This document shows, piece by piece, positions 4,559 to 52,800 of a DNA stretch of 64,000 nt; positions within the stretch are counted from its first letter, which is position 1; every line of letters starts with the position of its first letter. The stretch lies in assembly GCA_038087875.1 (NCBI GenBank), contig CM075982.1:62868001-62932000 (forward strand), given 5' to 3'. Position numbers and translations under genes: made by a program. The notes beneath the pieces were generated by a model. The model was not told the origin of the DNA and searched no databases. It saw nothing but the letters and a program-made list of their open reading frames with translations. This DNA is from Malacoraja senta. Its lineage: Eukaryota.

Positions 4559-4753
<195 letters not shown>

Positions 4754-5172
4754 TAATCAGTAATGCGTAATAAATACTTTGGATTCCCACCTAATAGATT
4801 AACTACAACATCAGTAAAATACCAATTCTAATTTAGAAGATCACTCGCCTAATTGGGTTTTATTAATATTTTCATTCAAACTGTTTCATCAAACAGAACA
4901 TAGTTTTAGTTCTGTTTTTGATCAACCTCAACCACCCAGAATCGGAAGTGACTTAGTCAAAGGAGAACTTGTGGTTGAATTGTATAGTATATGTATGTGA
5001 ATAGTGTAATTCTAAATAGGAATGGAAGAATGCTGTTGTATATTTTTCTGAGTGCTTACAAGTAATTTATTTTCTAGTCTTGTTAAGGTTATCACACACT
5101 GGAACCCCTCCAATGCATTCATGATCATGAATACCAAAAATGATAGTTGTCTTGGATCGGTTTTACAAATGA

Positions 5173-6640
5173 CTAGACTAAGTGGGCCCCGCTGGGTCCC
5201 TGTCACATAGGAGGCCTGGTCCCCCAACCCGTTCCCCAATGCAATATTCCACCACTCACCCATTCCCCAAATGCAACCCATCCCCCCAACGCGATATTGC
5301 ACCACTTACGCATAGTCCCCAACTGCGCAGGCACGGCTCATTTCACCTCATCCCCCAGCACTCCCTCCCCCTCCTCTTCACCCTCCTTCTTTCCCCTCTC
5401 CTCCTCCCCAACTCTCTCCCTCACCTCTACCTCCCTCTCCTTTCCCCTACCCTCAGTCACTCCCTCGCTCCCTCCATAACTACTCCTCTCCCTACCCTCC
5501 TATCCCTTTATCCCCCACTCCTCACCTCCCCCTATCCCCCCCACTATCCCTACTGACCTCCACCACTGCCCTCCTCTCCCTCTATTCCACACTCCCTACC
5601 TCCCCCCACCCCCCTCCCTCTATACCCTCTCCTCCCCCACTCTCCTCACCTCCCCCACTTTCCCCCCTCCCTCCCTACCTCTTCCTCTCCCTCAATCCCC
5701 CCACTCTTCCTCCTCACCTCCCCAGGATATTTCCCCTCTCCCCCTCCCCTCCCCTCCCCAATCCCTCCCTCACCTCTCCCTCCCTCTCCTTTCCCCTACC
5801 CTCAGTCACACCCTCCCTCCCTGTGTGTGTCTGTGTGTGAGTTATTCCGTGCAAACAGCTCGGCCACCCTGCAACCTGATTCTCCCTCCCTCGGTCCACC
5901 CCAGCTCAGCCGCCGCTTGGCCCGTCCCCGTCCTGTCCGATCGCCCGCTGCTGCCACTCGGCTCATCCCAGCCCTGCCTGCCTGCTTGCTGCCGCCGCCG
6001 CCGGGCCGAGGGTGGGGGGGGGGGGGGGATGGAGTCGGCATTTGTCACGGTGGGCAACACGAGTTTGATGAGCTGGTGGAGAAGATCTCCGAGAAGTCCG
6101 TGAGGGTGAATTGCTGCAACGGCGGAGACGGACCCGGGGGGATGGGTAGGCGGGACCGCTATTGCCGCAGAGGGCGGAAGGGGGAGAGGGGTGAGTGATG
6201 AGGGAGAGAGAGATGGGACCAGGGCCTCCACTGGGCCGCCACCGGTGATGGGTGAGATGATAGACAAGTTATTGTGAGGAGGGGAGAGAGGAGTTTGTAA
6301 GTGCAGGAGTTTGGAAAAGTAAGGAGTTTGGACAGGCCACCGCCAGTGGGACAGGAAGGGCCGTCGACATCCCGGCCGTGGCATTTTCTGACAGGAGAAG
6401 AGACCAATCTGCGTGGCGCTGACTGAAGGAATCTGCGCACGCGCGGTTTTTAAGATTTTTAAACCTCGATAACTTTTACAATATACCACTGATCGGAACG
6501 AATCTTGTTGCACTCGCAGCACAGGAGAACGGTGAATAACCTGGCGAAAAATCGTAGCGCTATCGTGCACCATTTTTGCGCGAATAGAAAAACTCCGCAA
6601 AGCGGAAGAGCACAAGATCAGAGTTTTAGTTATGTATAGA
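5173..6640 (-). mobile_element. Non-autonomous Helitron (1468 bp) carrying captured host sequence
   Basis: On the minus strand it starts A^TCTATACATAACTAAAACTCTG (6640) and ends with the imperfect GC hairpin GGGACCCAGCGGGGCCC (5200-5184) followed by ACTTAGTCTAG^T (CTAG 5173-5176). AT target, no TSD, no Rep/Hel ORF. GC-rich interior against AT-rich flanks. Confidence 0.8.
6029..6105 (+). pseudogene. ALG13: ALG13 exon 1-like fragment inside the Helitron (frameshifted)
   Basis: ATG 6029 gives MESAFVTVGNTS, then after a 1-nt frameshift (F)DELVEKISEKSVR, then |GTGAAT. Compare the ALG13 N-terminus MKCVFVTVGTTSFDDLIACVS. A donor GT sits at about the expected end of exon 1. Confidence 0.72.
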
Positions 6641-6831
6641 TTACAGCACAGAAGCAGGTCATTTGGTACAAAAGACTCCATGTGAGCTTCCTTCCACTGA
6701 TTTCTTATAACCCCATTAGCATAATTTCTATTCTCTATTAATTGTGTTTTTCCTGACTACCTCTTATCCACAATTCTTCTGCTCACTGTGTCCTAAGGGG
6801 GTAAGTTTGGCACTTTATCCAATGTCTAGTT

Positions 6832-7500
6832 CAAGAAGCCGCTGTGTGGAGTTGGGACAGCCGCTGTGTGGAGTCGGGAAAGCCGCTGTGTGGAGTCGGG
6901 TAAACCGCTGTGTGGAGTCGGGTAAACCGCTGTGTGGAGTCGGGACTTGCTGTGTGGTGCCGCGGCCGGTGGCCGCTGAGTGGAGTCTTTGCCCCCCACA
7001 CATCCTCCAGACACACACACCCTTCCCCCCTCCCTCCTTCCCTCCCTTCCCCCTCCCTCCTTCCCCCCCTTCCTCCCCACACCCCCCCCTCACACCCCAC
7101 TTTACCCCTCCCCGTTCCTCGCCCCTTCACCCTACCCTCCACACACCACCCCACCACCCACTCCACCGCCTCCCCCCCCCACACGACCCCTCCCCCCTCA
7201 CCACCCCTCCCCCCGACACCACCCCTCCCCCCGACCACACCACCCCACCCCCACCTCCTTTGGGTTGGGGGAAGGGGGGAACGGGGAGGGGTAAAGGGAG
7301 TGTGTGGGGGGGAGGGGGATGTGTGGGGGAGGAGGGAGAGGGTGGGAAGGAGTGAGGGGGAAGGGGATAGGGGGGTGTGTAGGGAGGAGAGGGAAGGGGG
7401 GGTGGGGAGGGGTGGGAGGGAGGGACTCCACTCAACGACCACCGGCAGCCGCACCACACAGCACCTCCCGACTCCACACAGTGGCTTACCCGGCTTCTTG
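6832..7500. mobile_element. Foldback/MITE-like element, near-fully palindromic, with subterminal 22-bp repeats
   Basis: Ends CAAGAAGCCG...CGGCTTCTTG. The left arm GCTGTGTGGAGTCGGGA..TGCTGTGTGGTGCCGCGGCCGGTGGCCGCTGAGTGGAGTC is mirrored at 7424-7483. A C-rich tract (~6990-7258) faces a G-rich tract (~7261-7423). TT on both flanks. Confidence 0.65.
6839..6948 (+). repeat. Tandem repeat, 5 x 22 bp (CCGCTGTGTGGAGTCGGGTAAA)
   Basis: Units start at 6839, 6861, 6883, 6905 and 6927, with a partial sixth unit. Confidence 0.95.
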
Positions 7501-8679
7501 TTGGTTATGACCTCTCAGTTCTGATAGTATCATTCTAGTGTTATTTTTGCACCTTTTCCAGCACTTCCAGGTACTTATCCCGATATGAAGACCAGGACCG
7601 TCATGGTGAAGAACAAACGCTGTCCTTGGTTACCCTCTAATTTATTTCATACTGCCATTTTGAATCTGTTTTAATTTGAACCAAACTATCCCCAACATCT
7701 CAGTATCTTTGTTAACTGTAGCTGAGCTAACAATCCTATATTCTATCCATTTAAAAAATATCTACTGCTACCTCTGCAATGTTAACCATCTGTTGCTGCT
7801 TCAACTAATCTGCTTTTGAAACAATAATGCATTATCTACTTGCATTGTTTGTAGGCCAGTCTCTCATTTTCAGATGGAGACACGAAACTGCAGATGCTGG
7901 AATCTGGAGCAGCATCTCTAGAACTTTGCGAGTCAGGCATCATCTTTGGAGGGAAGGACTGTGTTTTGGGTCGGACCCTTCATCTGGATTGAAATAGTAG
8001 AGGAGATATAGCCCATGTAAAGAAGTGAGGGAATTAGATGGGCAAGAAAATGATGGTGGCTCCAGATGTTAAGGTGTTTCTGGTGTATGGAGTCAGATGG
8101 AGGAGGAAAGGACGGAAATAGCATGGGAGGCTACTCTCATAGAAACATAGAAAATTGGTGCAGGATGAGGCCATTTGGCCCTTCGAACCAGCACCGCCAT
8201 TCATTGTGATCATGGCTGATCATCCACAATCAGTAACCCGTGCCTGCCTTCTCCCCATATTCCTTGATTCCGCCTGCCCCTAGAGCTCTATCTAACTCTC
8301 TTTTAAATTCATCCAGTGAATTGGCCTCTACTGCCTTCTGTGGCAGAGAATTCCACAAATTCACAATTCTCGGGGTGAAAAAGTTCTTCCTCATCTCAGT
8401 TTTAAATGGCCTCCCCTTTATTCTTAGACTGTGGGCCCTGGTTCTGGACTCCCCCAACATTGGGAAATTTTTCCTGCATCTAGCTTGTCCAGTCCTTTTA
8501 TAATTTTATATGTTTCTATAAGATTCCCTCTCATCCTTCTAAATTCCAGTGAATACAAGCCCAGTCTTTCCAATCTTTCCTCATATGACAGTCCTGCCAT
8601 CCCAGGGATGAACCTCGTGAACCTACGCTGCACTGCCTCAATAGCAAGGATGTCCTTCCTCAAATTAAGAGACCAAAAC

Positions 8680-8882: not shown

Positions 8883-8975
8883 TGGTGTCAAATAACTTAC
8901 CTTGCGCCTCCCGTTTATCGGTTTATCATTTAATTTTGACCCAGTTTTTTGGTTTCCCCCCCTAACTGTTTTGTT

Positions 8976-11900
8976 ATGGCCTCTTCTGCCCGTAAGCCCG
9001 ATGCGCTCGTTTTCGATTTCGACATCGCCCTTCGATGGGACATATTCAAACGCGACTTTGAACACTATTTCACGATTGCCCATCCTGGCGCCACCGACGC
9101 TCTCAAAGCCTCGCTGCTTCTCAACTTGGCTGGTCCCAACGCCTTGACTCGCTCGGACTTCTTCGTCTACGCTCCTGGAGAATCAGCTCGGGACCCGGCA
9201 TGTCTGTTGGCTAAGTTTGACGCTATTTGTGACATTCCTACTAATTGCATTTTAGAACGTTTTAAACTGTTCGCGCGGCGTCAGCTCCCTGGGGAATCGG
9301 CTGAGAACTATGTCATTGCGCTGCGGGACCTGGGCAGGCGCTGCCGCCTCGAGACGTGGACCCCCGATAATGTCATCAGGGACCTACTGGTTTACGGTCT
9401 CCGTGATGAGAAGCTCAGGTCCGAACTACTTCGCAAGCCGGATCTGACCTTGGCCGATGCAATGCACGCTACTCGCTTAGCCGACGCTGTTTCCGCGGCG
9501 GCGCCGCCGGCTGAACAGGCGATCAACTTTGCCAGCACTCCTAGCTATCCCATGAACGCACCCCAGTCGCGACCCCCGGTGTCGCTCGCTGCTCGAGGGG
9601 GACGCGCCCCGAGGTTCGGTGGTGCCACAAGGGGAGACACCCAGCAAAGGTGCCCTAATTGCAACTTCACATCTCATCAGTTCAATGTGTGCCCTGCGCT
9701 GGGAAAGTACTGCAACTCCTGTAATAAGTTGAACCATTTTGCTGCAGCCTGTCGTTCCCGTGGGAAGCCTGTCGCTGCTCGAAGGCAAAATTTAAACAAC
9801 CTTCTACAGTCGGATAATGATCTCAGCTCCCAGCACTATTCCGATGAACATTCTGTTCCTACATCCAACTCCTCTCAGGCAGAAACCAGCTTGTTTACCG
9901 TGGTGAACGCACCTGCTATGATAACGGATCCTTCTGTGCAAGTCACTGTGAACAACTCGACCTTCACGGCCAAAATCGACACTGGGGCGGTTACCAATGT
10001 TATGTCAACATCTCTTTTCAACCAGATAAGGACTAATGAGAAGATATTTTCTCAGAGCTCAAACCTGCATGCCTACGGTGGGGAGATCCTTACTCCTGTG
10101 GGCAAGGCCACACTACACTGTAAGATACTGAAGGCCACTCGGCCCCTCACCTTCTTTCTCCTCAATCGAAGTTGCGTTCCCCTGCTGGGGATCCAGGCAT
10201 GCCAGGAAATGGGACTGGTGTCCTTCCACCGGGACATCCACCACGTGCGGGCTCTTATGGACCCGCTGGCCGAGTATCCTGACCGCTTTGATGATAAGCT
10301 AGGCAAACTACCCTGCAGCTACAAGATTGAAGTGGACCATAAGATCGTTCCTGTGGTCCATGCTCCTCACCGTATTTCCTTCGCCATGAGGGACAAAGTG
10401 GAGGCGACCCTACACAGTATGGTACAAATGGGCGTCCTAAAGGCGGTCGTCGAGCCCACCAGCTGGGTCTCTTCCATGGTTGTTGCTGCTAAAAAGGACA
10501 TGAGTGAGATACGCATCTGCATCAACCCCAGAGACCTCAACCTGGCCATTCGGCGCCCTCACTACCCTATGAGAACGGTGGAAGACGTCGCTGCACGGGT
10601 TGGTCCAGCAACGGTCTTTTCGGTCCTCGATGCCAAGAGTTCATTCTGGCAGATACCACTGGACGAGCGGTCGTCCATTTTGACAACCTTCGCCACCCCC
10701 TACGGGAGGTTTCGGTTCCTCCGAATGCCCTTCGGAATCAACTCTGCCAGCGAGGTATTCCAGCGAACCATGGAACAGTTGTTTTCAGATCTGCCTTGCG
10801 CCATAATTGTTGACGACATCCTCGTTTACGGTAAGGATGTTGCCGAACACGATGTCAACCTCCGCCTGATCCTGGACCGGGCCAGGCAAATCAACTTGAA
10901 ACTGAACCCCAAGAAGTGCCGATTCCGCGTCTCGGAGGTCACCTATGTTGGACACGTATTCACCGCTGAGGGGCTGAAGCCTGACCCGCAGAAAACGACT
11001 GCCATCTCAGGGATGCCTCCTACTAACGTGGCAGGCCTGCAACGCTTTCTCGGCTTGGTAAACTACCTGGGGAAGTTCATCCCCGACCTAAGCGAGCTCA
11101 GCGCTCCCCTGAGGGATCTGATCAAAAAGGACACTTCCTGGCTTTGGTTACCCAATCATCAGAAGGCATTTGACATTCTTAAGTCTAAACTGATCAGCAC
11201 ACCCACGCTCAAGTTCTTTGACCTGCGGCATCCCATTGTCCTCACCTGCGACGCCTCTCAATTCGGACTCGGTGCCGCCTGCCTCCAGGTCCATGACGGC
11301 CTGCAGATGCCTGTCTCATTCGCGTCCCGCACCATGACCGCCACCGAACAGCACTACGCGCAGATTGAGAAGGAGCTACTGGCCGTGCTGTTTGCCTGCT
11401 CCAAATTCCGGGACTACATCGTGGGCAACACTTTCACCGTTGAAACTGACCATCAACCACTTGTTACCATCCTCAACAAACCGATCCATGTGGCCTCATC
11501 ACGTCTGCAGCGCATGCTGCTGCAGCTCCAGCGTTTCACGTTCACGGTGGTTTATCGTAAGGGGAAGGACATGTTCGTAGCCGACACGTTGTCTCGCGCC
11601 CCGCTGACGTCCACTGCTCGCCACCAATACGAAACGTCCGAGTTACTAGTACTACGATTGAACTTCGTCCCCTCGCCACAGATGAAATCCCTGGTTGAAC
11701 ACACTACTAACGACCCTGCCCTGCAACAGCTGTCTGCCGTCATCCGGCAGGGCTGGCCTGACTGTCGCTCGGCACTGCCGGCTGGAGCCGTGCCCTACTT
11801 CCTGATTCGGGACGAGCTCGTATTGCACGACGGCGTGGCGGTGAAGGGTCACAAAGTGGTCGTGCCCGCGGCACTGCACGACCACTATTTTCAGGTCGCA

Positions 11901-13155
11901 CACCGCGGTCACACTGGGGCCGAAGCCACTTTGTCTCTCGCCAAGGCACAGTTCTATTGGCCGGATATGGCAAAGTACATCCGGGAGAGGGTCTCATCGT
12001 GTTCCACCTGCAACAGCCGCGCCCCCCATCAGCAGCGTCAGCCGCTTCTACAGCAGCCCGCGCCCGGACTGCCCTGGATGGCGCTCGCCACAGACATTTT
12101 CGAGTGGCGGGGCAAACATTTCCTGGTACTCGTTGACTTCTACTCCAGCTGGTTTGCGGTTGACCGGCTGCCTTCCGTGACCTCTTCGGCCGTCATCGAC
12201 AGGTTGGACCCTCACTTTAGCACATTTGGCCCCCCCGGCAAGCCTGCAGTCGGACAATGGCAGCCAGTTCACGAGCTCCGAGTTTAAAGCGTTCGCTTCC
12301 AGATGGAACTTTCGCCATTTCACAAGCAGCCCGGAGTACCCGCAAAGCAACGGTTTGGCCGAGCGCGCGGTCCGCAGTGCTAAGCACCTGTTGGAACAGT
12401 GTGGTGGCATTAACTCCGACTTCCACCTGGCCCTCCTCAGCCTTCGGAACATCTCTCGCGACCCTGCCATGGGTTCACCTGCTCAGCGGCTCCTGTCTCG
12501 CGCTACCAGGCTCCCACTCCCGGTGGCCCAGCGATCCCTCATACCCTCGGTCCTTCCACCTGCGGCGATTCAGAAACGGATTGCCTTCAGGCAAGACGTC
12601 CAAAAGCGGTCCCATGACAGGTCCTGCCACCCGCTGCCGCCCCTCTTCCCCGGTCAAGTAGTCCGTATGCAGACCACTCCCGGTCACTCCAAGCTCGCTA
12701 CTGTCGTCGGCTCTGCGGGGTCGCCCAGGTCCTATTTCGTCGACTACGCTGGGACCATTTACCGACGGTCTCGCCAGCACCTTCGGCTCGTCCACGAGCC
12801 GCGTCCTCCTCCCGCCGATCCCTTTGCTCCCCCGCTGCCTGTTTCCCGTCCGGCCGTTGCCCTGCCCGTGATTCCCTGCATGCCTCGCTCTGCTCCTCCT
12901 TCGCCCCCTCCGCTCCAACACACTCCGACTAGTCCTCGCACGCCTCCCCGCGCTCTCCCCGGTCCCGGCCCCGCATCCCCTCCGGTTTCGGTGCCTCGAT
13001 CTTTTCCGTTTCCTCCCGTTTCTCCCTTTCAGGTTCGTCTGTCCCCGCTGGTGCCTCTTCCTCCTCCAGGAAGGGTGGATGGCGAGACGCGAACCCGGGC
13101 GGGACGTCTGGTCAAACCGCCTGACCGCTATGGCGATGTTGCCTATCTATCCTAG
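8976..13155 (+). CDS. Gypsy gag-pol polyprotein (gag zinc knuckles, protease, RT, RNase H, integrase); single +1 frameshift at C7 run 12230-12236
   Basis: ATG at 8976. Two CCHC knuckles (CPNCNFTSHQFNVC, CNSCNKLNHFAAAC), protease IDTGA, RT LDAKSSFWQIPL/MPFG/IVDD, RNase H CDASQFGLGA, integrase HHCC and D..D(SDNG)..E(AERAV). The two ORFs join if one C is removed (FGPPASLQSDNG). Confidence 0.93.
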
Positions 13156-15048: not shown

Positions 15049-15153
<105 letters not shown>

Positions 15154-15962: not shown

Positions 15963-16169
<207 letters not shown>

Positions 16170-20031: not shown

Positions 20032-20145
<114 letters not shown>

Positions 20146-26729: not shown

Positions 26730-26805
26730 CTCTATTGGACAATAGTCCCCTATGCAAATAAGGCGCCCGCGTCACTTCCGTTCTTTCTCGGCCGCCATTT
26801 TGAGC
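26730..26805 (+). promoter_or_regulatory. ADNP: Probable ADNP core promoter in a CpG-rich segment (~26330-27200)
   Basis: Reverse CCAAT (ATTGG 26734-26738), octamer ATGCAAAT 26752-26759, overlapping half-CRE/ETS CGTCACTTCCG 26770-26780 and YY1 GCCGCCATTTTG 26791-26802. It is the only non-TE CpG-rich block between DPM1 and the ADNP CDS. Confidence 0.75.
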
Positions 26806-27253
26806 AGCGGAGGCTCAGTGAATTATTGTCCGAGAGAGATTGAATTTTCGCCCCCCTCTTTTACCCCCCCTTCGCGGCCCAGCGCCTCAGAAAGTTATCG
26901 GTCCGGGGAGAAAAAAAAAGTTCGCTCGGTCGGGTTTGAGGCTTTGTTGTTTTTTTGGGGGGGAGGAAAGGGAAAATTGCGGGGAGCCGCTTGTCCGGCG
27001 GCGCTCAGTTGTCTTTTTTTCCCCTCCTCTCCTCCTCCTCTTCTTTTGCCACTCACTAAACAGCTCCCTCTTTCAGTGAGCGCTGGAAGCTCGGCCGCTC
27101 GGGGGTTGATGTGAGGAGATTGAAGCGGCAGCAGGAGGAGGAGGCCCTTTGTTTGCGGCTCGCGTTCTTCTCACTGCTGCCGGCCCCGGCTCGCGCTTTA
27201 ACTGAACAATTAAAACAAAATAATCAGAGCAAAAAAAACCCCCAAAAAACAAG
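26785..27253 (+). other. ADNP: Putative ADNP non-coding exon 1 (start approximate)
   Basis: Runs from the YY1-marked TSS region to a strong donor AAG|GTGAGA at 27253/27254. Confidence 0.5.
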
Positions 27254-28690
27254 GTGAGAACATTTATCTTTCTTCTAACAAGTTATTATGACAGATTTTT
27301 TTTCGTGCACACAAATAGTCCACAAAAAAAAATCCAGGACATATTTTTTTTTCCTTTTGCACTGGGTTGTTTAAAAAAAATAACAGTGTGCGATGCATGC
27401 GAGTAGTTTATCTCTAGCAATTGGCACTTTATGGATAAAGATGAATCGACCTAAGGTAACAGATCCAGCAGTAACGATTGTTTTATCCTGTTTGTGTTGC
27501 CTATTCGCACGATATAAAAAATTGCATTAACACCGATTAATTTGCGAAATGCACCATTTGTGAGCCGGCATCAGTTATACTAATCAATCATTTATAATTG
27601 TCAATCATTTGTGTGTGTTTACTGTACTTCAAAGTTAGGTGGGGATTCGTATATTAGTATAATTTACCCTGTATTGATTTGATGTATATATGATAGGTCA
27701 AGGCAACCAATCGATGTTAGTGTTGCTTTGCCTAATCGTGGATTACAATATCACCCAAAAGTGTTTCTCAAAACTGGATGGCCAAGGTTTTTTTTTTCAA
27801 AAGAAGCTCCCCTGTTCAGAGGTTGTTTGATCTATGTTCAGTTAATTTCGAGCTCCCTCAAAATCAGCTCTGTCCTGGACAATTGAAATATAACATAGTA
27901 ATTGTTACCGGTTAATCTGTGTGAGGCATCAGTCGTGAATCTGATCGAACATTTGTTTACACATTTGTTCAATACCTTTTCTAGTGCTCCATGGTCTTTA
28001 GACAGCATGTTCAACCAATCCAGACAGCAAGGAACGCCCTAGACAGAAGACGGGGTGGATGGAAACTGTGATTTAATTTATTTGTTAATTTACATATAAG
28101 TATTCACGTGAGTTCACTCGGTGACAGTTCTGCATATTTTATGATGCTGATAATATTTAGGGATGGGATAAGTTGACGATGATAATGTTAAAATGTGCAC
28201 CTCTGGACTGGTTGCCGGCTGTGACGTTGCTGTAAAATGGCGCGAGTACTGCTCCACTGCAGACATGAATAGATCCAGGGATCCCCAGTTTTGTAATTGC
28301 TTAAGTAGAAATGTTTAGCACGTGTTCTTTGGAGAAAACGTATCGTGATCCAACCGTTATCAGGTTCAAAATGTTGCAACGTACATGACCGGCTTTCAGG
28401 AAAAGGCATTTAGAACTGTTGTGCATCAAATAAAATAGTTCATTAAAAAAAAATTCTTGTTGCATTAAAATCCATTTCGGTTGTAGTGTTTTCTGTATAA
28501 TCTGATGGCAACCCAATTTTCCTTTCTTGCGTGCACAGCCATATTGTAATGCAGCCATGCAGAAAATGAAAATCAATACTGGGTGCAGCAGGAGGCGCTC
28601 TCCAGAAGCTGGTTTGGAGGCTCCAGATGCAGGATGAGGAGTTTTTGGTGAAATATATGCTGTGAGGGGAAAGGGTGGACGCTCCCAATA

Positions 28691-28706
28691 CAGCGCCACC
28701 TGTTGC
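28691..28706 (-). promoter_or_regulatory. CTCF-like motif in ADNP intron 1
   Basis: CAGCGCCACCTGTTGC is the reverse complement of GCAACAGGTGGCGCTG, close to the CTCF core CCASYAGRKGGCRS. Confidence 0.45.
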
Positions 28707-31700
28707 TTAATGGTGACTGAACATTGGGTTACATATAAAGCACATTCCGGCAAGTGTCTTGCAAGAATGCAGTTAATCCAGTAAAACTTCACTAGATATG
28801 TTTTCAGGAAAACATAGTAATTTGCTTAAGATCCAGCTCCATATTGATTGTGTCCATAATTATTGACCGTGTCTTTGTATAACCAGATCCATTTGACGAC
28901 CACTAATGCAAGGCAAAATACACATGAGTTTTTTGATGTCAAAGAATAACTGAAGAGTTTTTGGTTGACTCCGTTTTTTGGGTCAACTCATTCAAGGCAT
29001 TGGTTCTAGATTGGTCCCCCCCCCCCCCCCCCCCCATTGACTAATTAAAGGATAATCGTTTAAGTTGGTTGTTTCAAAATATGTTTTGAGCTTACAAATT
29101 CATTGATGTAGTGAGACATCGGTGTAATCAAATGTGTTTTGATTTACCAAGAAATTATCTTTCAAATGTGTACGGATAAAAAAAATTGATAGCACCTTAT
29201 TACTGCCATTTATCATTAGGTTAGGAGATGTGTACAATTTATCAAAGAATCTTGTAGTTTCAGGTAACTGGTTATCTAAATTTTGAACTATTCTGTTTCT
29301 CAGGATTTTGTCCCCAACTATTTTTTGTTACTATATGGTTCAAAATGGCGCACGGTGCCATTATTTAAAAAAAATCTGCAGGATATGTCATGTAATGCAT
29401 GTGATTTAATAAACTGCAGAGTAAGATGTGAACTTTTCAAATCTTGAATCTATATCATTTTTAATATTACACATTGCTATGGCTGTAGGTTACACAAATG
29501 GGATACACTGTTTACAAAATCGGTGGACAATTCTAATTGTTTTTTTATAGTTCGCCATTGGTTCCTTTGGCATGTAAATGTTTAGAAAGTGTGTATTTAT
29601 TTAGTCCATGTTAAGGTGTAGCTGGATACCATTTCTCTTCAGTTCAATTGTCTTCCGTGGTTATGCACATGATTTTTCGCCCAACTCTTTACAGTACATA
29701 TTAAGAGTAATGTTTTTTTTCTGGCATGAGGAATATCTTCATGGCTTACTTAAATTCATTGTACATTTCTATTTCTTTACAAGAAATCTTTTACTTTTTT
29801 GCCTTTGTGGCTTAGGCCAAGTTTACAAGCTTGGCTGGGTTATAGTGCCTCTGCCAAATGGGTAATGAACTTGGCTATGAAATTCAAAATCTAGTAACTT
29901 GCAAAGTTTCTACTTAGCGGCATCTGATGCAGTTTTCATGTACCTTCCCATTGAGATGACTGAATGTGTTGAAGAGTGGGAACTCCACCCCCTCTACCAT
30001 CAGAATAGGTGGTTTCCTTAATGCCTGATGGAGAATAGCTAACTAATCATGTATTTGCATTCAAACCAAAGATGTCAGTTGTCTACATATGGATACCTCA
30101 ATCGCATTATGCCATCTGAACCATTGTGTTGGCTGAAGGGCTCATTCTTAAATTATATTATGCATTAATATTAACTATTGGTCTGCTGGTAGCTCCAGGG
30201 ATTTGCGAGGAATCTTATTACTTTGTTTCCAAATGTTACTTTTTGCAGAAAAAATATTTATTAATTAAATAAAACTCAGTTCTGTTAGGTAAATTTTATG
30301 CTAAATAGTTTTTCTTAATTCTTCCCCTAATTACCTTTATTTCTATTTAATAAGATTTTTTTTAAATCTTGGTTTAAAACACTGCAGGATTTTTGAGAGG
30401 TGGTATACGGTTGACAACTTTTATATGACAACTGTCTGAAGTGCCAGGTCAAAACAAAAAACATGGATAACCATTCAGCATTAATTGGATGTTGCCAGAG
30501 AAGTAATATGATTGACACTTGAGAATTTCAACTGTTGAATGCAGATATGTCCTTGACAGTGAAATTTCACCCTGATTGGAGTTCATTGTTAGTATTCCAA
30601 GGAGTGTACAAATGTTCGTAATAGGAAAATATTTATGACCTCATCTCTTTTAAATACCAAAATTAATTTATCGTGTGACTTCTAAATTTCCCTTTACATT
30701 TTTTCTAGCCATTATCTTGGGTTTAGATAAAGACATGGATTAGGTTTATCCTGTGTGCAATGCTTTTGATGTTTACCTGACTGAATTATGGCAATCATTT
30801 GAAAATGATACATCTTAAAATGAGACGTCTTGGTTCTTTCACATGCCAGGCAGGATTACTGTAATATCTTGGCAATAGAAAATATAGTACTTTTAACGTG
30901 TAGATGCATCTGAGTTTTTACAAATCTGATTAGATCTACGTTGGCAAGGGGAATTTAATGTCAATATAATCTTGAAATATTTCAACATTTGGGGTTGTTC
31001 CCTTGTAGAATAATTATTCCATGATTATTTGGTTTATTATACTGGCAATACTCTTCACAGGTAGAGGCCTTGCTTCTTTGTAAATCTTAAAATTATTTAA
31101 TGTCATATAAGTCCTGGCAACTAATATGTTGACTGCTTTTGTGAATGCAGGGGAAATATAGATGAACTGCATAATTGGCAGCTATTTGGCAACTGCTTGT
31201 TGTAGTCTTTATCATTAAGTTTGTTAGAATTTAAATCCTCAAAGAAAGTGAAAGCTTGTACATTATATACTTAACGTGGCATTTATTCTGTATAGATAGT
31301 GAATGCTACTGCCATTTATATTTGAACAAAGTAAATTCTTCAACTTCATAGGGAGAATTTTGTTTTTTTCATTGTTTTAAGTGTCTAAAGATTTAAATTG
31401 CGCATTTGGAGAGAAGCTTTGCCTGAAGTTGGAAAGTAATTTTCATATTGTGAGAGGTGCTTAAAGCATATTAATTCCAAGAGATGTTGAAGATTTCACG
31501 AATGGCTTGATGGTCTATATAACAAATCACTACGAAGTAAATGCTAAGAAACACAATTTTAATAACCTGAATCTGCCAATATGACGTTTTCAATGATTTA
31601 AGTCTATTTTGTTCCCTGCTTTATACCTTGAGGAATTTAAAAGTTTGTCCTACTTGCTTTAGTTAGATGAATGAAGATATTTGGTCAAGTTCCTGATGTG

Positions 31701-34700
31701 CATTTACCAGCTGTATGTGTGCCTGTACAGTAAAAAATAGATTATCTTTAGATAATGTTTCTGCTTGAATTACTAAATCCTAAAGGAAAATGGCAAAAAA
31801 TTATCTTTGAGGTTAAAATCACCCTTTGCTCTCATGTTCCTGTGCTTTATTTCCCGACGATCAACTGTCATGTTTCAATGGTTTCTTTAATGTCACATGT
31901 ACCAGGTACAGTGAAATACATTTTTTGTCATGGTGCCAAAGGATAATTTTGAAGAATCCTTTAGTTTTTCTTTAATTAATGCTTTTGAGGTAGTTGTACA
32001 ACTGGCAGAAGAAACTTCAGTTAATTGGTGCGGCCTTGAAGAAGAAAGGATGTTAGGAACTCACAATGATATCAGATGGTTTAGATATGTGCTGTTAGAA
32101 GTGTCAACGGTAATATTTGCTGAAATAAATAGTACATGGTATGCATTGTAAATCTTCTAAAACTGCATATATTTAAGAACATTTAATTGCAAGGTAGGTA
32201 GTTGGGCTGTAGTGTCAAACATTTGTAAATAGTCCAGTAGTTCAAACCCTCGGCTGAATCATCTTTCATTACTTTATATGAATTTATTAAGAGGGATTGT
32301 TTTTGAGATTCTCTGAACTGAAAATATCACTTTAGCCACATATATCAGGTGCACATTGGTCAGTTGTAGGTGCGTGGTGCTGTAGAGTAGGGATTAAAAC
32401 AAACCATTGATTACTTTTGAGTTTGTCGCTGCTGCACTGAAGGAATTTACTATTTTGAGCTTGCATAGGGGTATGATTAGATTTATAAAATAGAATCTGA
32501 AAACTAACAACATGGAAGGAAATGTTGGCTCATTGTCGCTTTCCTGCCTAGTTCCACCTTACAGAATTGACTGTCATTACTTGTGTAACTGCAGCTCTTT
32601 GGGTATCTAAGCATTTGTTAATCACGATGATCACTACCCTTGCAGAGAATTAATTTAAGCCCAAACAGACTTTGAGGTTTTTTTCCCCCTCCCAATATTT
32701 ATTCCCCCATGGCTTTTAATTGCTGTACTAAGGTAAATGGGTCCTTTTGATTTGCCTGATCTGTACCCTCATAATTATGTATATCTCAATGAAATCTCTG
32801 GTCATCTTCTAACAAACACAATCCCAAATTATCTATTCATTCCGCGTAGCTAAAACTTTCCAAAACCTGACTCTGTATTTGAGTTTCATCTGCACCTTGT
32901 GCATTCTTATCTTTGCTGTATGTGATCAGAACTGTAGACTGTATTTAAAGCTGTGGCCCAAGGAGAGTTGTATATAGTTCTAGCGTAACCTCGCTGCTTT
33001 ATATTCTATGCCTCTGTTAGTGAAGAAAAACATCACTTGTGCATTTTTCACTGCATCAGTAAAGTGTTCTGCTACCTTTGCAGATATGTGGATGTAAGTT
33101 CCAAGATTCCGTGTGTTTCATAACACCATTTTGTTCTCCCATTTATGTTTTTTTTTCCCTTGTCCCCAAATACCTTAAATTTCACTTCTCTGGATTAAAT
33201 TTCCTTTGCCACCTTACTACTCAATATCTTCCAGCAGTCTAAAAAGCTCCTCATTGATGTCAAAGGTCTAGCTTTCATTCGTGATCCCTACATCTAAGTG
33301 TAAATTGGTATACATTTCAAAAAGGGACCACAAACAACGTTTTTCTTATCACAAAAATTCAATAATTACCATTAAAGGCTCGGGTTTGGAAATACGTTTT
33401 ATATAAAAGTAGCTTATTTTCTTAGACATGGCAAATCTGAGACTTTAAGCTACAAATTTAATTATAAGGCCTTATTGTTTTTTATTACATTTTTAACCAA
33501 TAAGTGATACATTATATGAAAATCCATGTACTATGTATGCATACCTAGAATTTTCATTTCTACTCGTGAAGAATGACTGCAGTATTTGATTTTCGTTAAC
33601 ATTTGGCAGAGGTGTACATGAGAGAGAGCTGGTTTATAATTCATGTGTATGATTATTTTAAATTAATTGTTGAATTTCGCTATTGAGCTTGGCCCATATC
33701 CAAATTTTTTTTGCAAATTGGATTAGTGAGCTTCTGCTTTGCAGACAAATTTGAAGTTGACTTTTGACCAGATACCTGGAAAAGGAAGCTTGAGTGAAAG
33801 AAGTCGAGTGGAACTGGAACTTCAAAGCCACTAGGCAAATCAGAAGCAACAAAATGAATTGCGGGGATCAAAAAGTGCAAACTTCCTGGGTAATAGTTAA
33901 ACATAATAGTCTGGTGCACAACTTTTGCAGACTAGATTGATGACCCGAATGCTCATGTAGCATTTATTTACACTTACTGGTCAGATTGCAAACACACCAT
34001 TAATGGATTCCTTTTTTTTTTTTAATACTGCCAATCTGGGAGAATCATATGTATAAACTCATCACCCAGAAGACTCAATAGCCAAGCAAAGGCTTAGAAA
34101 TCCTTGAATGCGCAATTGAAACAAAACCTGCTATAGCCCAGATTAAAATTGCACATGTTACTCAATTCTGCCCATGTTCTGTCATTTAAATGTTGTTGTA
34201 TCTGCCTCAACTATCTCTGGCAGCTCTTTCCATATACCCACCACTGTCTGTGTGAAAAAGTTGCCCCTTGGGTTCCTATTTAAAAAAAATGGAAAAAGAC
34301 ATGATTAAGAAGCAATGAGTGATAGCAGGAAAATGCCAGGGAAGTGTGATGGCATGTGCCCTCTTTCAATACCTACACTTTTGGGAGCCAAATGTTCCCC
34401 AATTGCTTCTATCAAAATAGATTGTCAGTTTTCTCCTGAATTTTGCAATGCAACAATGTCATAATATTTTAAATTTAATTCGCATACAATTTTTCAATAC
34501 CAATGCATCGTGATATAAATAGGAAATAGACAAGAAGTCTCCATCCATGCCATTCTTAGGAGAATCCACTCCTGACAAAGTGCATGCTGGCTACCCCAAC
34601 AATATTTCATTTTTGTTTATAGAGCATACAACTTGAGAGAAAATAAGTTTTATCGCAATCATTGATCATTCGGGAGGAATTATTTGGAGTTGAGCAAACT

Positions 34701-35889
34701 ACATATGTTTCTTGGTCACTGGGGCAAGTAAACGATGCAGAGCTCAATGATCTGGAATGGTTTTAGTGCTTTCAGCCACCTTTATAAATGTGGCTATGAG
34801 ATAGTGGTTGGCTGGTTTAATTATAAGATATGCTTTGTCTATTGTAAGTGGTGGTCAGATCTCTTAAATGAACAGTTGCAATTTAGTTAATTAGGAGCAT
34901 TTAAAGTTCAGCATACACGTAGAAAGTAGCTGCGCTAATGACAAGGACCTTGTATCTGGTGCTTGTGGCTTGTGGAAGACTCCAGAGAGGGCTGGGAAGT
35001 TGGATGTTCCTGGTTGGATGAGACCTAGGGGTAGGATATTGAACACCACTCGCAAAAACCCACCCTTTAAATTACTCAACATAAGAAATTGTGATTTATC
35101 TCGTTTAATTAACCAAAATATGATTTGGTAAACATATAATGTGCCTGATGCATCATTGTTCTTTCAGTAAAGTAGATTTGAACAATAATGTGATTAAAAT
35201 GGACAAAAGTCTCTTGTCACTCTGTTTTATGAGGTTGCCCAAGAATTTTGATGTGAAGGAGGTACTTTGTCATTTAGTGGCTATATTCTGCAGGTCATAA
35301 AGCAGACCTATTCGGAAGAAATTTAAACATAGAGGAAATTAACTGATATGAAGTTTCCCTATTTGTGAGGAATATTAACTTTGTGTTGCTTGTAATATAG
35401 TTATATTATTTTTATGATTCATATTTAATTATCCATTTAGAGATCCATATATTTAATTTGTATAAATTTTAGTGTTTGTAATTAAAGCAAGTTGGGAAGT
35501 GAATAATCTTCCTATAATTGCCCATTGACTGCAAAGAAACTTTGTATTATTGATAATGATAAAGGACCAAATTTACGTGTTATTGCCTAATTTAAAGTAG
35601 ATTGTATTTAAAATTGAGAATATTTTATCATTTATAAATGCATTAGCATGGTTTTGATGTGTTTGTATTGGTTTATTGTCATTTATACCATGATACAATG
35701 AACAGCTCTGTTTGCTTAATATCCAGTCAATTCATACTATACATGAGTACAATTAAGCTATACACTAACAAAATGCATTATAGTATTACAGTTGCAAAGA
35801 AAATGCAAAGTCTGCAGTGAGGTAGGTTGGAAGATTAGCATCTGTTTATGGGAGGACTGTTCAGTAGTTTGATGACAATAGGGATTTGT

Positions 35890-36670
35890 AAGGAATGGGG
35901 GAGAAGAAGAGGAGGAGGAATTGACAATGTTTTGGGTTGAGCCCTTTTTTTAGGACTAAGGGTCGTATAAAGAGAGAAGCAGTGATAAGATGTTCACCAG
36001 TGGGTGATTGGTGGACCGAGGAGGGGTGAGGGATGATGGGCAGCTGGGGGAGGAGGAGGATGTATTTTGAGGCAGAGGCAGGTGGATGATAGATGGAGGC
36101 AGCCAATAAAGTAGCAGGTGATGATGATTCCTCAAACAACTGCTGGAGGGTTATAGGCAGGTATGCATAGGCTGACAATGCTAGGATGTGATAAGTAAGG
36201 AAGGTGATAAGGAAACCACTAGGAGAGGTGAAGGGCAAGGGGAACCAGACTTTTGTTGGGGAATGGGAGACGACTGTTGGGTTGGATAATTAGGTGGCTG
36301 GAACTAGGAGGGGAAAGGGTAATGTAATGGGATAATTACCTGCAATAGGTGAGTGTAGAGAGAAGGCCAAAATATCCTGATTGTGGATGGAGGTGTATAA
36401 AGACTATACATTCATAATGAAGATGAAGCGGGCTAGGAAAATTGGAATTTATCAAAATGATGGACGGCAAGTGAGATGACATATATGGGTGGGAAGTGTT
36501 TGGACAAGGAGAGAAATTATAGCGTTAAGGTAAAAGAAGATGGGTTCTGTGGGTCAAAATGATGAAAAATAATGGGCTTAACAGGACAGTCCAGTTGGTT
36601 GATTTTGAATAAAAGCTAGAAGCAATACGTGTGCGGTTGGGGGGCATAAGGTTGGAGTCTGGAAGGAAGA
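35890..36670 (-). mobile_element. Degenerate Penelope-like element
   Basis: Decayed hammerhead-like motif near 35925-35955 and a purine-rich tract. 36540-36640 (ATAATGGGCTTAACAGGACAGTCC...GATTTTG) resembles the PLE RT segment at 75-140. Confidence 0.45.
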
Positions 36671-37112
36671 TCCATTGTTTTGTTGAGATTTGTGACAAGG
36701 ATTTTGGCTCTTACGTTTCTATATTGTGAGATGGAGTTTCTTGCAGTCACTGTTTGACTCTGCATTTTGGAGATCCGTTCTGGTAATACGCATTATTGAG
36801 AACGATGAAAGAATTTATGCTTTAAGTATGGACAATTTGAAGAACTTTTAGTTATACAGGGAGGATATAGATGTCCATCCATCTTCACAATTAGTTTTGA
36901 ACTTTTCAGAGCAATTAGTTTGCCATTTTGGAAGTCTTGTGGACAACTGAAGTTTAAGATTCTTTATATTTGGAACATGTTACACTCTGTCTAAACTATG
37001 CTGGATAACATGGGTTGGATGCTTAGGAAAAATATTAAGTTATACTTAATTTATCCAAAGCAAAAATTTTGCGTTGAAATTTACATAAATTGACATTTTG
37101 GTACCAAATAAT

Positions 37113-39005
37113 TAGAAACATAGAAAAATAGGTGCAGGATTAGGCCATTCGGCCCTTTGAGCCGAATGGCCTAATCCGCCATTCAATATGATCATGGCTG
37201 ATCATCTAAAATCAGTACCCCGTTTCTGCTTTTCTCCCCATATCTCTTGATTCCTTTAGCCCTAAGAGCTAACTCTCTTGAAAACATCCAGTGAATTGGC
37301 CTGCACTGCCTTCTGTGGCAGAGAATTCCACAGATTCACAGCTTTCTGGGAGAAGAAGTTTTTCCTCATCTCAGTCCAAAATGGCCTACCCCTTATTCTT
37401 AAACTGTGACCCCTGGTTCTGGACTCCCCCAACATCGGGAACATTTTTCCTGCATCTAGCCTTCCAATCCTTTAAGAATTTTATATGTTTCTATAAGAGT
37501 CCCTCTCATCCTTCTAAATTACAAACCCAGTCGACCCATTATTTTATCATATGTCAGTCCTGCCATCCTGGGAATTAACCTGGTGAACCTACGCTGCACT
37601 CCCTCAATAGCAATAATGTCCTTCCTCAAATTAGGAGACCAAAATTGCACACAATACCCCAGTTGGGGTCTCACCAGGGTCCTGTACAACTGCAGAAAGA
37701 CCTCCTTGCTCCTAAACTCAAATCCTCTCGCAATGAAGGCCAACATGCCATTAGCTTTCTTCACTGCCTGCTGCACCTGCATGCTTACTTTCAATGACTG
37801 ATGTACAGGCATATCCAGGTCTTGTTGCATCTCCCGTTTTCCTAATCTGACACCATTCAGATAATCTGTCTTCCTGTTCTTGCCACCAAAGTGGATAACC
37901 TCACATTTATCCACATGATATGGCATCTGTTCATTCACCCAACCTATCCAAGTCACCCTGTAGCCTCATAGCATCCTCATCGCAGCTCACACTTGCCACC
38001 AAGCTTTGTGTCATCCGCAAACGTGGAGATGTCACATTTAATTCCCTCGTCTAAATCGTTAATATATATATTGTAAATAACTGGGGTACCAGCACCGAGC
38101 CTTGTGGCACCCTACTAGTCATTGCCTGCCATTCTGAAAACGACCCGTTAATTCCTACTCTTTGCTTCCTGTTTGCCAACCAGTTTTCTATCCATGTCAA
38201 TACTGTACTCTGAATACCATGTGTTCTAATTTTGCACACTAATCGCTTGTGTGGGACCTTGTTAAAGGCTTTCTGAAAGTCCAGGTACATGACATCCACT
38301 GGCTCTCCCTTATCCATACTACTTGTTACATCCTCAAAAAATTCAAGTAGATTAGTCGAGCATGATTTCCCCTTCATAAATCCATGCTGATTTTGACTGA
38401 TCCTGTGGTAGACAAACATGCTGGAGAAACTCAGCGGGTGAGGCAGCATCTATGGAGCGAAGGAATAGGTGACATTTCGGACGTAGACCCTTCTGATCCT
38501 GTCACTGCTTTCCAAATGCGCTGCTATAACATCTTTAATAATCGATTCAAGCATCTTCCCCACTACCGATTTAAGGCTGACTGGTCTATAATTCCCTGTT
38601 TTCTCTCTCTCTCCTTTCTTAATAAATTGGCTACCTTCCAGTCCACAGGAACTGATCCATAGTCGAGAGAACATTGGAAAATGATCACCAATGCATCCAC
38701 GATTTCTAGGGCCACCTCCTTAGGTATTCTGGAATGCAGACCATCAGACCCTGGGGATTTATCTGCCTTCAATCCCAACCGTTTACCCAACACCATTTCC
38801 TGATTAATGTGGATTCCCTTCAGTTCCTCCTTCCCACTAGATACCCGGTCCACTAGTATTTCTGGGAGATTATTTGTCTTCCTTAGTGAAGACAGAACCA
38901 AAGTATTTGTTTAACTGTTCTGCCATTTCCTTGTTTCCCATTATAAATTCACCTGTCTTTGACTGTAAGGGACCTACATTTGTCTTCACTAATCGTTTCC
39001 TTTTT
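37113..39005 (-). mobile_element. CR1 LINE, 3' ~1.8 kb of ORF2 with frameshifts
   Basis: Consecutive minus ORFs KSPGSDGLH, GNYRPVSL, QHGFMKGKSC..YLDFQKAF, VPQGSVL, VRPQLGYCVQFWSP, KNFFSQKAVNLWNSLP. TAGAAACATAGAAA tail at 37113. Confidence 0.92.
38407..38492 (-). mobile_element. Penelope-derived mini-element inserted in CR1; 10-bp TSD
   Basis: TSD CTGATCCTGT at 38397-38406 and 38493-38502; same arm sequence as 3950-4119. Confidence 0.75.
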
Positions 39006-49806: not shown

Positions 49807-52800
49807 GATTATCGTACAAAACCATTTTGCTGCAGCGCTTGCCCTTTTGCATCCAAATTTTTTTCTGCCTACAAAAGCCACTTCCGAAATGTTCATAGTG
49901 AAGATTTTGAAAACAAAATCCTCATTAATTGCCCTTATTGTCCATACAATGCTGACAGAAAGACCCTGGAGACCCATATCAAAATATTTCATGTTCCTCT
50001 CTGGAAAGTACCTAGTGGAGGCAAGAATGCACACCATGAAAAGTCAAAGCAGGATAGCAGTCTTAAACTGAAGCATGGTGACAGTGTGGAACAAGCAGTC
50101 TATTACTGCAAGAAGTGTACTTACCGTGATCCCCTTTATGATGTTGTCAGAAAGCATATTTACAGGGAACATTTTCAGCATGTGGCAGCCCCTTATGTGG
50201 CAAGAACAGCAGACAAGTCAGTGAATGGAACATTTTCTGCCACTAATGGAAGAGAGGATGGGACTGTGCATTGTAAACGTTGTCTCTTCATACCCAAAAC
50301 TTACGAAGCCTTGGTGCAGCATGTTATTGAAGACCATGAACGAATAGGATACCAAGTAACAGCTATGATAGGGCATACTAATGTGGTTGTTCCAAGATCA
50401 AAACCCTTGATGCTGATAGCACCAAAGCCACATGACAAGGCTTTAGCTGCTGGAAATTATCAGGGTGGGAAAGGTTCAATGCAGCAGAATATGAATCGTG
50501 CATCCATGTCAAAAAATACACAGAATTCGGCTGTCAATCTTATGTCGGGTGGTGGTCGTCTGCCACCAAAGTATGCTGTTTCATCGATGGCACATAACTA
50601 TTCTTTGGGTCAACAAATGAGGCTCCCACTGCCAGGTGGTTTACCAGTTTCTATGCAGCAGCGACCACAAACAGTAAAACAGTTGATCTCTGGTGGCAAT
50701 GGGCGACAATATGGAGTTGGTGCCGGTGAACAGAGGAGAGCATCGCAGATGCAATATAATGTTCAGTCAGGAAGCATGACTGGTAACAGTGGATCAAGTC
50801 AATTATCAATGAAACAGTCACAGTTCAATATTTCTCAAGCTCAGAGGATGCAAGGATTATCTGCTTCAGCAGTAAAGTCATTAACTTCCCCAACAGGCCT
50901 AACTAATTCTGCTAACCAGAGCCCTGCGTTAGCAGGGTCTGCTGCTCAGAAGTGGAAGATTTGCACAATGTGTAATGAGCTTTTTCCAGAAAGTGTGTAC
51001 AGCATACACTTTGAAAAGGAGCATAAAGCTGAAAAGATCCAGGCTGTAGCTAATTACATTCAGAAGATCAACAGTTTCACAAGCAAATGTCTCTACTGTA
51101 ATCGCTATTTACCCAGTGAAACACTGCTTAACCATATGCTTATCCATGGACTCTCGTGTCCCTACTGTCGTTCCACTTTCAATGATGTTGAAAAGATGGC
51201 TGAACATGTAAGAATCCTTCATATTGATGAAGAAGTGGGACCCAAGACTGAATCAACGTTAACTTTTGATCTGTCTACACAGAAAGGTAGTCGCAGTAAT
51301 ATACAGCTCCATGTTACTACATACAGTACATCTGAGAGTACCTCGGTGGAGAATACAAATTATCGGCCCCAGAATCAGAACTTGGGTTTTAGAAAGCCAG
51401 AAGGGCAGTTGCAGCAGCCAAAACCACAGGTCAAATCTAAAATAAAGCCAGATTTGAATTCTATACCTCAAACCCAGATACCCTATAAAAATGATGTGGG
51501 CAAAACCCTTTGTCCGTTGTGCTTTTCTATTTTGAAGGGCCCAATATCTGATGCTTTGGCGCACCATCTGAGGGAACGGCATCAGGTGATACAAACAATT
51601 CATCCGGTGGAGAAAAAGCTTACCTATAAGTGCATTCACTGTTTGGGAGTCTACACGAGTAACATGACAGCTTCAACCATAACATTGCATCTGGTGCACT
51701 GTAGAGGTGTTGGAAAAACACAAAATGGTCAGGATCGGAGCCTTACTCATGCCAAGGTAACACACTCGCCAAGTGTAATGCCCATGAAGCGAGAATATGA
51801 GTATGCATATGGGGACTTTGCTTTAATGAAAAAAAGGAAATTGGATGGTGAAGAACCTGTTCAGGGTTTAACCCCGGGAGACGATAAACCAGAGGAGCCA
51901 GTAGCTTTAGCTATTGATCCCAAGGGCTATGAGGATGAGTCCTATGAGGCCAGAAAAATGTTCCTTACAAACTATTTTAACAAACAACCTTACCCAAGCA
52001 GAAGGGAAATTGAAAAGTTGGCAGCTGGCTTATGGTTGTGGAAATCTGATATTGCCTCCCACTTTAGCAATAAGAGGAAGAAATGTGTTCGAGATTGCGA
52101 GAAGTACAGGCCTAAAGTATTGCTTGGATTTAACATGATGGAGACGCGAAAAGTAAAGCACAATATGGACTTTGGGCCGACTTGGAATATACTAAATAAC
52201 AAAGAAATAGTTGGCAAAGAATCTGTTACTTTAAAACCAAGCATAGAAAAAGTAAATCAGAAACTGGGAAAAGGGAGAAGAGATTTGATTCGGGGACCAG
52301 AAAAATTGGAGGGAACTGTTTTAGATTTGAGCTCCCAAATGGAGGAAAATTCAAATCCAAACTTGGGAAAGATGAAAGGAAGAACTGTGAACCTGTGTTC
52401 AGAAAACGTGGAGGGAAGTGCTTTAGACTTGAGCACTCAGGTGGAAGAAAGACCTTCAAATGCCGGCTCTGCAATGGAGGAGGGAACACCATTGGATTTG
52501 AGTGCTCAGGTGGTGGAGGAAAGTCCTTCAATCAAGAGCACTGAGATGGTGGAGGAAAGTCCTTCAAATATGAGTTCTGAGATGGCAACAGAGAGCCCAT
52601 CAAATGTAAGTTCTGATATGGTGGAGGGAAGTGCTTTAGATTTGAGTTCCCAGATGGTGGAAAAAAGCCCTTCAAGCATGAGTGCTGAGATGGTGGAGGA
52701 AAGCCCATCTAACATGAGCGCTGAGATGGTGGAAGCAAGTCCTATAAATACGAGTCCTGATAATATGGAGGAAAATGCAACAAATGCTTTTGTTGGTGAA

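Follow-up and report, generated by a model that had tools for sequence, protein, structure and literature searches.

Does the GC-rich stretch at positions 5173–6640 of a 64,000-nucleotide window from Malacoraja senta (contig CM075982.1, forward strand) represent a Helitron, and did this rolling-circle transposon bring the start of one gene, ALG13, into an intron of another, DPM1? Such an arrangement had been put forward from the letters of the window (by which we mean the whole 64-kb stretch) in what is hereafter called the original prediction. The analysis reported here makes it likely that 5173–6640 is a single member of a canonical, non-autonomous elasmobranch Helitron family of high copy number, and that this member carries a 5′ piece of ALG13 as cargo and occupies an A^T site (the caret marks the point of insertion) in a DPM1 intron. 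The coordinates of all features are collected in Table 1.

The ends of the element were inspected in the window and in Logan contigs of four DNA runs (X1, X2, X3 and X7; organism labels A–D), which were aligned to positions 4700–7100 at 85% likeness. Read on the minus strand, the element opens with TC at 6640 and 6639 (TCTATACATAAC...), preceded by a host A that is the complement of T 6641, and it closes with ACTTAGTCTAG at 5176–5173, followed by a host T that is the complement of A 5172. The full 3′ end on this strand reads GGGACCCAGCGGGGCCC-ACTTAGT-CTAG, which is of the CTRR type. No target-site duplication (TSD) was found at 5173–6640, where the left flank (...CAAATGA) and the right flank (TTACAGC...) are unlike each other, and no terminal inverted repeats (TIRs) were found at the element ends, whose complementarity was confined to low-complexity C-rich and G-rich stretches. 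The element bears neither a poly-A nor a simple-repeat tail, and no match to tRNA, 7SL, 5S or any other Rfam family was obtained inside 5173–6640 at E values up to 1. The GC fraction rises from about 0.33–0.39 in the flanks to 0.54–0.68 inside. A minus-strand open reading frame (ORF) of 279 amino acids (aa) inside the element belongs to no Pfam family, and the element is without transposase-like coding capacity.

The hairpin near the 3′ end differs between this copy and its relatives. In the window it is imperfect (GGGACCC-AGC-GGGGCCC; 6 bp plus one mismatch), and the 61-nt end that contains it folded no better than shuffled sequences. Among the other copies, A at 5187 and T at 5192 account for about 98–99% of the contig depth, both positions being C in the window copy. 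The family consensus, GGGACCC-AAC-GGGTCCC, forms a perfect 7-bp stem located 7 nt before CTAG and folds with a free energy (dG) of −7.5 kcal/mol (z −3.24; 1 of 200 shuffles equally good). Relative to this consensus, the window copy carries two substitutions (5187 and 5192), by which the stem is weakened. At the level of sequence, 5173–6640 is thus a canonical, Helitron1-type Helitron in every respect. The original prediction had described such an element on the minus strand, with TC and CTAG ends at an A^T target and without a TSD, and all of these were found, with ends that 77–177 contigs share in each of the four runs; the GC hairpin that it had described holds in perfect form for the family consensus and only imperfectly for the window copy.

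That the stretch might instead be another kind of dispersed repeat, namely a short interspersed nuclear element (SINE), a miniature inverted-repeat transposable element (MITE) or a fragment of some larger composite repeat, is scarcely credible. The weak hairpin of the window copy would suit this explanation, but the lack of a TSD, of TIRs, of a poly-A or simple-repeat tail and of a tRNA, 7SL or 5S match speaks against it, as do the TC and CTAG ends at an A^T site in many copies and the canonical consensus hairpin. Particular candidates were rejected as follows: a TIR transposon for want of terminal inverted repeats; a SINE, known RNA or retroposed copy for want of an Rfam match, tail and TSD; and a Helentron/Helitron2 element because the target is A^T rather than TT and there are no short asymmetric terminal inverted repeats. 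A coding role for the 279-aa ORF was likewise rejected, since it has no Pfam family.

The canonical Helitron at 5173–6640 proved to be one of many. In X1, the flanks had a word depth of 23.6 and zero differences from the window, which indicates that X1 comes from the window's species and perhaps from its very sample. Summed depth in this run was 58,633 in the bin with position 5173 and 763,821 at 5186–5266, ranged from 158,575 to 231,461 over 6401–6643, and dropped to 74.6 after 6643. At the termini, summed depth therefore stood at 1.6–7.6 x 10^5 versus 23.6 in the flank, the ratios being similar in three further organism labels, and depth inside the element was 10^3–10^4 times that of the flank in the four runs. 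Loose contig ends piled up at two outer places only, namely 5172 (129, 177, 121 and 77 contigs in X1, X2, X3 and X7, respectively) and 6641 (91, 142 and 145 contigs in X1, X2 and X3). Beyond both places, the consensus was AT-rich and of low agreement (0.39–0.43), consistent with many different AT-rich insertion sites. The matches of other copies run through 5172 and 6641 before diverging, so the flanking A and T appear to be common to the copies, as expected for an A^T target, these flanks being known for the other copies only as a low-agreement consensus. The many copies bounded by the same TC and hairpin–CTAG ends that had been foreseen are therefore seen as shared contig boundaries in four runs. 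Parts of the element were present in eight organism labels, a second copy was not found elsewhere in the 64-kb window, and a metagenome scan for the consensus 3′ end returned no match.

The interior of the element is less uniform. Depth in X1 was 19,171 at 5834–5914, 5,766–7,521 over 5915–6157 and 26,783–37,873 over 6158–6400, with values of 5,833, 3,034 and 998 at the single places 6040, 6097 and 6065. Cargo depth thus amounted to 40–800 times the single-copy word depth, in agreement with the predicted spread of the exon by a Helitron family. Variant break points inside the element were located at 6425–6431, 6303, 6233, 6153 and 5225–5228; together with ends that are far deeper than the cargo, they are consistent with a family whose members have the ends in common but differ in cargo. 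Those at 6153, 6233 and 6303 suggest a modular make-up of 6106–6430. Joints between 5259 and 5368 skip or step back about 44–104 nt among copies. As a side observation, sub-repeats of ~50 nt occupy 5225–5370 in the 3′ subterminal region, and their number differs between family copies.

The cargo was then compared with ALG13. On the plus strand, 6029–6064 translates as MESAFVTVGNTS and, past a 1-bp frameshift at 6064–6067, the next frame continues as (F)DELVEKISEKSVR to 6105. A 16-mer, MKCVFVTVGTTSFDDL, and a 44-aa human N-terminus, both of which we take to be those of human ALG13, served as references; the 44-aa sequence matched the yeast Alg13 structures 2KS6 and 2JZC (E 7e-4), at the family level only. 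When the 16-mer was compared, position by position, with the window in all six frames, the best match was 6029–6076 (score 34, z 6.2; next best 26), though it is cut short by the frameshift. Local alignment of the window peptide, with X at the break, scored 56 against the human N-terminus and 24 against yeast Alg13, values that were reached by 0 and 37 of 5000 shuffles, respectively. With the variants of other copies introduced, the scores rose to 68 (human) and 28 (yeast), and for both versions of the peptide the shuffles reaching the score numbered 0/5000 against human and 20–37/5000 against yeast Alg13.

The other copies also bear on the broken frame. The window's 1-bp deletion is present in about 95% of the copies' depth, which points to an early loss of the frame in the subfamily. 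In 2–5 contigs per run, a C is inserted behind 6066, so that AGT TTC GAT reads S-F-D and the frame is restored; the depth with this added C was 50.8/998 (X1), 25.6/588 (X2), 18/178 (X3) and 42.9/241 (X7), which is roughly single- to few-copy. One X19 contig combines the added C with 6057 A>C to give GTTSFD, the canonical ALG13 motif, and two X20 contigs, which have an added A besides 6057 A>C and 6067 G>C, read TTSFNE in frame. An intact low-depth version may be the parent gene.

Around the exon, the whole cargo (5830–6430) has 63% GC and a CpG observed/expected (o/e) ratio of 0.66. No ALG13-like frame follows the donor, all three frames reaching a stop within 50 codons. An exon succeeded by a donor and non-coding DNA points to the capture of a genomic piece rather than of complementary DNA (cDNA), and an origin of the exon from a retroposed mRNA was rejected because no exon-2-like frame lies after the donor. 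The original prediction is upheld in its account of the cargo: an exon-like 6029–6105 with a GT donor, CpG-rich DNA upstream and intron-like DNA downstream, and an ALG13 likeness that ends at the donor, were all present, and the peptide likeness to the start of ALG13 is the top match in the window and lies above all 5000 shuffles for the human N-terminus. Between the 3′ subterminal region and the cargo, the low-complexity stretch contains an internal direct repeat (5393–5473 and 5741–5822; 90%).

Several points weigh against ALG13 capture and amplification. Neither Pfam nor PDB yielded a match for the 26-aa peptide (X at the frameshift), a result of little weight as the fragment is too short for the HMMER filters. 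No protein of 72–228 or 25–79 aa in the protein database shared three 5-residue words with the second half of the exon; an elasmobranch ALG13 of 72–228 aa with the identical peptide is accordingly either absent from the searched collection or nonexistent. Taken by itself, the score of one short, unanchored peptide, estimated at 34 bits or so, would be borderline when set against an entire proteome. Parentage is suggested by an N-terminal match of 21–26 aa and by the variants that restore frame and motif; at the nucleotide level, the parentage and the captured extent are putative. Finally, if a depth of about 24 stands for a single copy, the exon would occur roughly 40–250 times (about 10^2 copies) and the termini thousands of times (an estimated 10^3–10^4), figures that are orders of magnitude only, as summed word depth is not copy number.

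Such points could be accommodated if the Helitron were real and its likeness to ALG13 due to chance or to another source, the cargo being anonymous GC-rich DNA with an ATG-led frame that happens to read FVTVG.TS. The match spans only about 21 aa, Pfam and PDB are blank for the peptide, no database protein has three words of its second half, the Atlas features search gave best values of 0.82–0.83, equal to the level for shuffled proteins, and no RNA read was spliced from the donor. However, the match begins at Met and takes in the invariant motif at the ALG13 N-terminus, nothing else in the window scores as high, every one of the 5000 shuffles falls below it, the variants of other copies come nearer to the canonical motif with the frame restored, and the exon is followed by a GT donor and preceded by CpG-rich DNA. 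We consider a chance or foreign origin unlikely and, judging from the sequence, descent of the exon from ALG13 very likely.

The capture of an ALG13 piece by a Helitron can be framed in terms of the known mechanism, in which the Rep/helicase sets out from the 5′ TC end and terminates on reaching the 3′ hairpin–CTAG signal. The present element would have been mobilised in trans by the Rep/helicase of an autonomous relative. An ancestor of the subfamily would have captured genomic DNA, at the DNA level, comprising ALG13's CpG-rich 5′ region and first coding exon together with the beginning of its intron 1. The chimeric element would then have been amplified to roughly a hundred or more places, and the exon frame would have been lost early through the 1-bp deletion.

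The host gene was identified with motifs of human DPM1, by which its exons were located. The corresponding peptides on the plus strand are VVSGTRY...GGVYGWD (4679–4729), RGANFI...LTGSFR (15085–15153), GYVFQMEM (16104–16127) and a fourth of 16 residues (20041–20088). DPM1 exons at about 4652–4750 and about 15085 bracket the element and hence place the Helitron inside a DPM1 intron; the predicted location is therefore borne out by DPM1 exon peptides on the plus strand on either side. The Helitron itself is antisense to DPM1, and the ALG13-like exon is sense to it. As a separate observation, the DPM1 frame across the host intron (4746–4756 and 15078–15086) seems to need an upstream exon end ...ATCAG, with AG + C giving Ser. 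This end would put GG rather than GT first in the intron, a donor at AGG^GTATAA would break the frame, and the junction may be misread.

The age of the insertion was assessed at its left junction, which is bridged by contigs of X1, X2 and X3 that contain >470 nt of unique flank plus 50–56 nt of the element and have 0, 19 and 8 differing letters, respectively. The insertion is hence also present in organism labels B and C and is older than their separation from A. A contig joining 5172 to 6641, which would represent the empty site, was absent among the matches listed, and all three organism labels reaching the site carry the insertion. The window copy is therefore old and, with its degraded 3′ hairpin, most likely a fossil that is immobile and without function. 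It had been noted in the original prediction that ALG13 and DPM1 share a role in the dolichol pathway, possibly by coincidence; coincidence is indeed the best reading, because the element is present at many sites. As a single copy, it is probably of no consequence to DPM1.

An active cargo would have a different bearing on the host gene. The promoter and first exon within the Helitron would start transcripts spliced from 6099 or 6105 to the DPM1 exon at ~15085, giving a 5′-truncated or chimeric DPM1 RNA, as for the NUBPL Helitrons of bats. The sense orientation relative to DPM1, the GT donor, the retained CpG (o/e 0.66) and the bat precedent are compatible with this scenario. Against it, 12.9 million oligo-dT RNA-seq reads from a close relative (organism C) yielded just 6 on 5836–6330, none of them with a joint or loose end at 6099 or 6105; RNA-library contigs of organism B run through the donor unspliced; and the frame is broken in the window copy. 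Single-cell reads lay mainly over 6125–6310 and look like unspliced background, and a search for RNA runs that contain the exon had X1, a DNA-like run, as its sole result. No sign of the cargo as a promoter or first exon was seen, here or elsewhere, in RNA data that are thin and come from relatives of the window's species. An active cargo at this locus is thus very unlikely.

A broader proposal was also considered, according to which a skate/ray Helitron family repeatedly captured promoter-plus-first-exon modules, with ALG13 as the instance found here, and seeded hundreds of introns with them, some now acting as alternative promoters or first exons that yield chimeric transcripts, here with DPM1. 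We regard this as quite unlikely; if true, the bat phenomenon would have arisen independently a second time among vertebrates, in a lineage separated from bats by about 400 million years. A family with an estimated 10^3–10^4 termini, together with a subfamily that spreads an ALG13-like promoter and exon, would make Helitrons count as a real component of batoid genomes, alert annotators to spurious first exons of ALG13 type and CpG islands inside introns, and provide another vertebrate system, the second, in which to ask if host transcription is rewired by captured promoters.

Maize and vesper bats provide well-documented cases of large Helitron amplifications whose cargo includes the 5′ ends of host genes. 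The closest counterpart, the Myotis lucifugus element HelibatN3 (Pritham and Feschotte 2007; Thomas et al. 2014, PMC4224331), is alike in capture at the DNA level with the exon–intron junction kept, but differs in that the present host is an elasmobranch, the cargo is ALG13-like rather than NUBPL and the frame is broken in most copies. HelibatN3 carries NUBPL's promoter, 5′ untranslated region (UTR), exon 1 and part of intron 1 in about 1000 copies, 5′ gene ends are the preferred Helitron cargo in bats, and some captured pieces enter host transcripts there (PMC4224331). Promoter activity and chimeric transcripts have been demonstrated in bats; for the window element they are hypothetical. With the canonical Helitrons of plants, insects and vertebrates, the element shares the 5′ TC, 3′ CTAG, GC-rich hairpin, A^T insertion, absence of TSD and TIR, and AT-rich targets; it differs in having no Rep/helicase gene in this copy. 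Helentron/Helitron2 elements, common in fishes, belong to the same rolling-circle superfamily but differ in their T^T target and in the short asymmetric terminal inverted repeats that they bear. The exon resembles ALG13, a subunit of the uridine diphosphate N-acetylglucosamine (UDP-GlcNAc) transferase (yeast 2KS6, 2JZC), in the N-terminal beta-strand/loop motif FVT.G.T..F..LV right after the start codon; unlike ALG13, it comprises the first 24–26 codons only and is frameshifted, and so is a gene fragment rather than a gene. Surveys of chondrichthyan genomes name Helitrons merely as a superfamily present (PMC4350176, PMC8455134). No report of Helitron gene capture in cartilaginous fish was found in the literature searched, and no publication in which the motif FVTVGTTSFD is printed was retrieved.

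Table 1. Coordinates of the Helitron copy, its cargo and the flanking DPM1 exons in the 64-kb window (a dot denotes no strand)
Feature	Position	Strand	Details
Non-autonomous Helitron copy	5173..6640	-	1,468 bp; limits based on depth jump and loose contig ends at both
5′ terminal region, common to whole family	6431..6640	-	Begins TCTATACATAACTAAAACTCTG; depth 158k-231k (X1); CpG o/e 1.76
3′ terminus: subterminal GC hairpin, 7-nt spacer ACTTAGT and CTAG	5173..5200	-	
3′ subterminal region, short sub-repeats of copy-dependent number	5201..5330	-	Deepest part of element, 234k-764k in X1
Host A of A^T target	5172	+	T after CTAG on minus strand; agreement of other copies beyond it 0.41
Host T of A^T target	6641	+	A before TC on minus strand
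C/T-rich (minus strand G/A-rich) low-complexity internal stretch	5331..5829	.	Composition, tandem repeats
CpG-rich, promoter/5′UTR-like cargo upstream of ATG, G run at end	5830..6028	+	71% GC; CpG o/e 0.64; depth 7.5k-19k (X1); promoter role putative
ALG13-like first coding exon	6029..6105	+	Antisense to Helitron, sense to DPM1; 1-bp deletion at 6064-6067
Two candidate GT splice donors	6100-6101 (GTGAGG), 6106-6107 (GTGAAT)	+	From sequence
Intron-like cargo downstream of donor	6106..6430	+	Depth 5.8k-38k; break points 6153, 6233, 6303
DPM1 exon upstream of host intron	4652..4750 (approximate limits)	+	31-residue peptide
DPM1 exon downstream of host intron	15085..15153 (approximate limits)	+	23-residue peptide

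Beyond DPM1, the window contains an ADNP exon at 50086–53493 (+), which matched ADNP_N with an E value of 1.9e-293 and also includes a homeodomain. Its nearest named relatives are those of Narcine bancroftii (90%), Pristiophorus japonicus (85%) and Scyliorhinus canicula (84%), and one Logan protein is 98% identical to the window ADNP. These relatives assign the genome to the elasmobranchs and, of the species named, nearest to a batoid. In human, too, ADNP is a neighbour of DPM1. A run of 200 N at 1609–1808, which is an assembly gap or masked, adjoins a GC-rich stretch at ~1200–1650. The DPM1 intron that hosts the Helitron also harbours a Ty3/Gypsy-type long terminal repeat (LTR) retrotransposon at 8949–13155 (+), with two adjoining ORFs of 1112 and 309 aa that encompass aspartyl protease, reverse transcriptase, RNase H, integrase zinc-binding and integrase core domains. 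A palindromic, foldback-like repeat with a core that is C-rich and then G-rich spans about 6826–7512, 190 bp from the Helitron. It consists of five 22-bp tandem units, AAGCCGCTGTGTGGAGTCGGGT, at 6836–6944, with their reverse complement at about 7423–7510, and this palindrome accounts for sub-threshold matches to microRNA (miRNA) models at 7204–7331. The foldback repeat is also present in high copy number, with a word depth of 28k–40k in X1.

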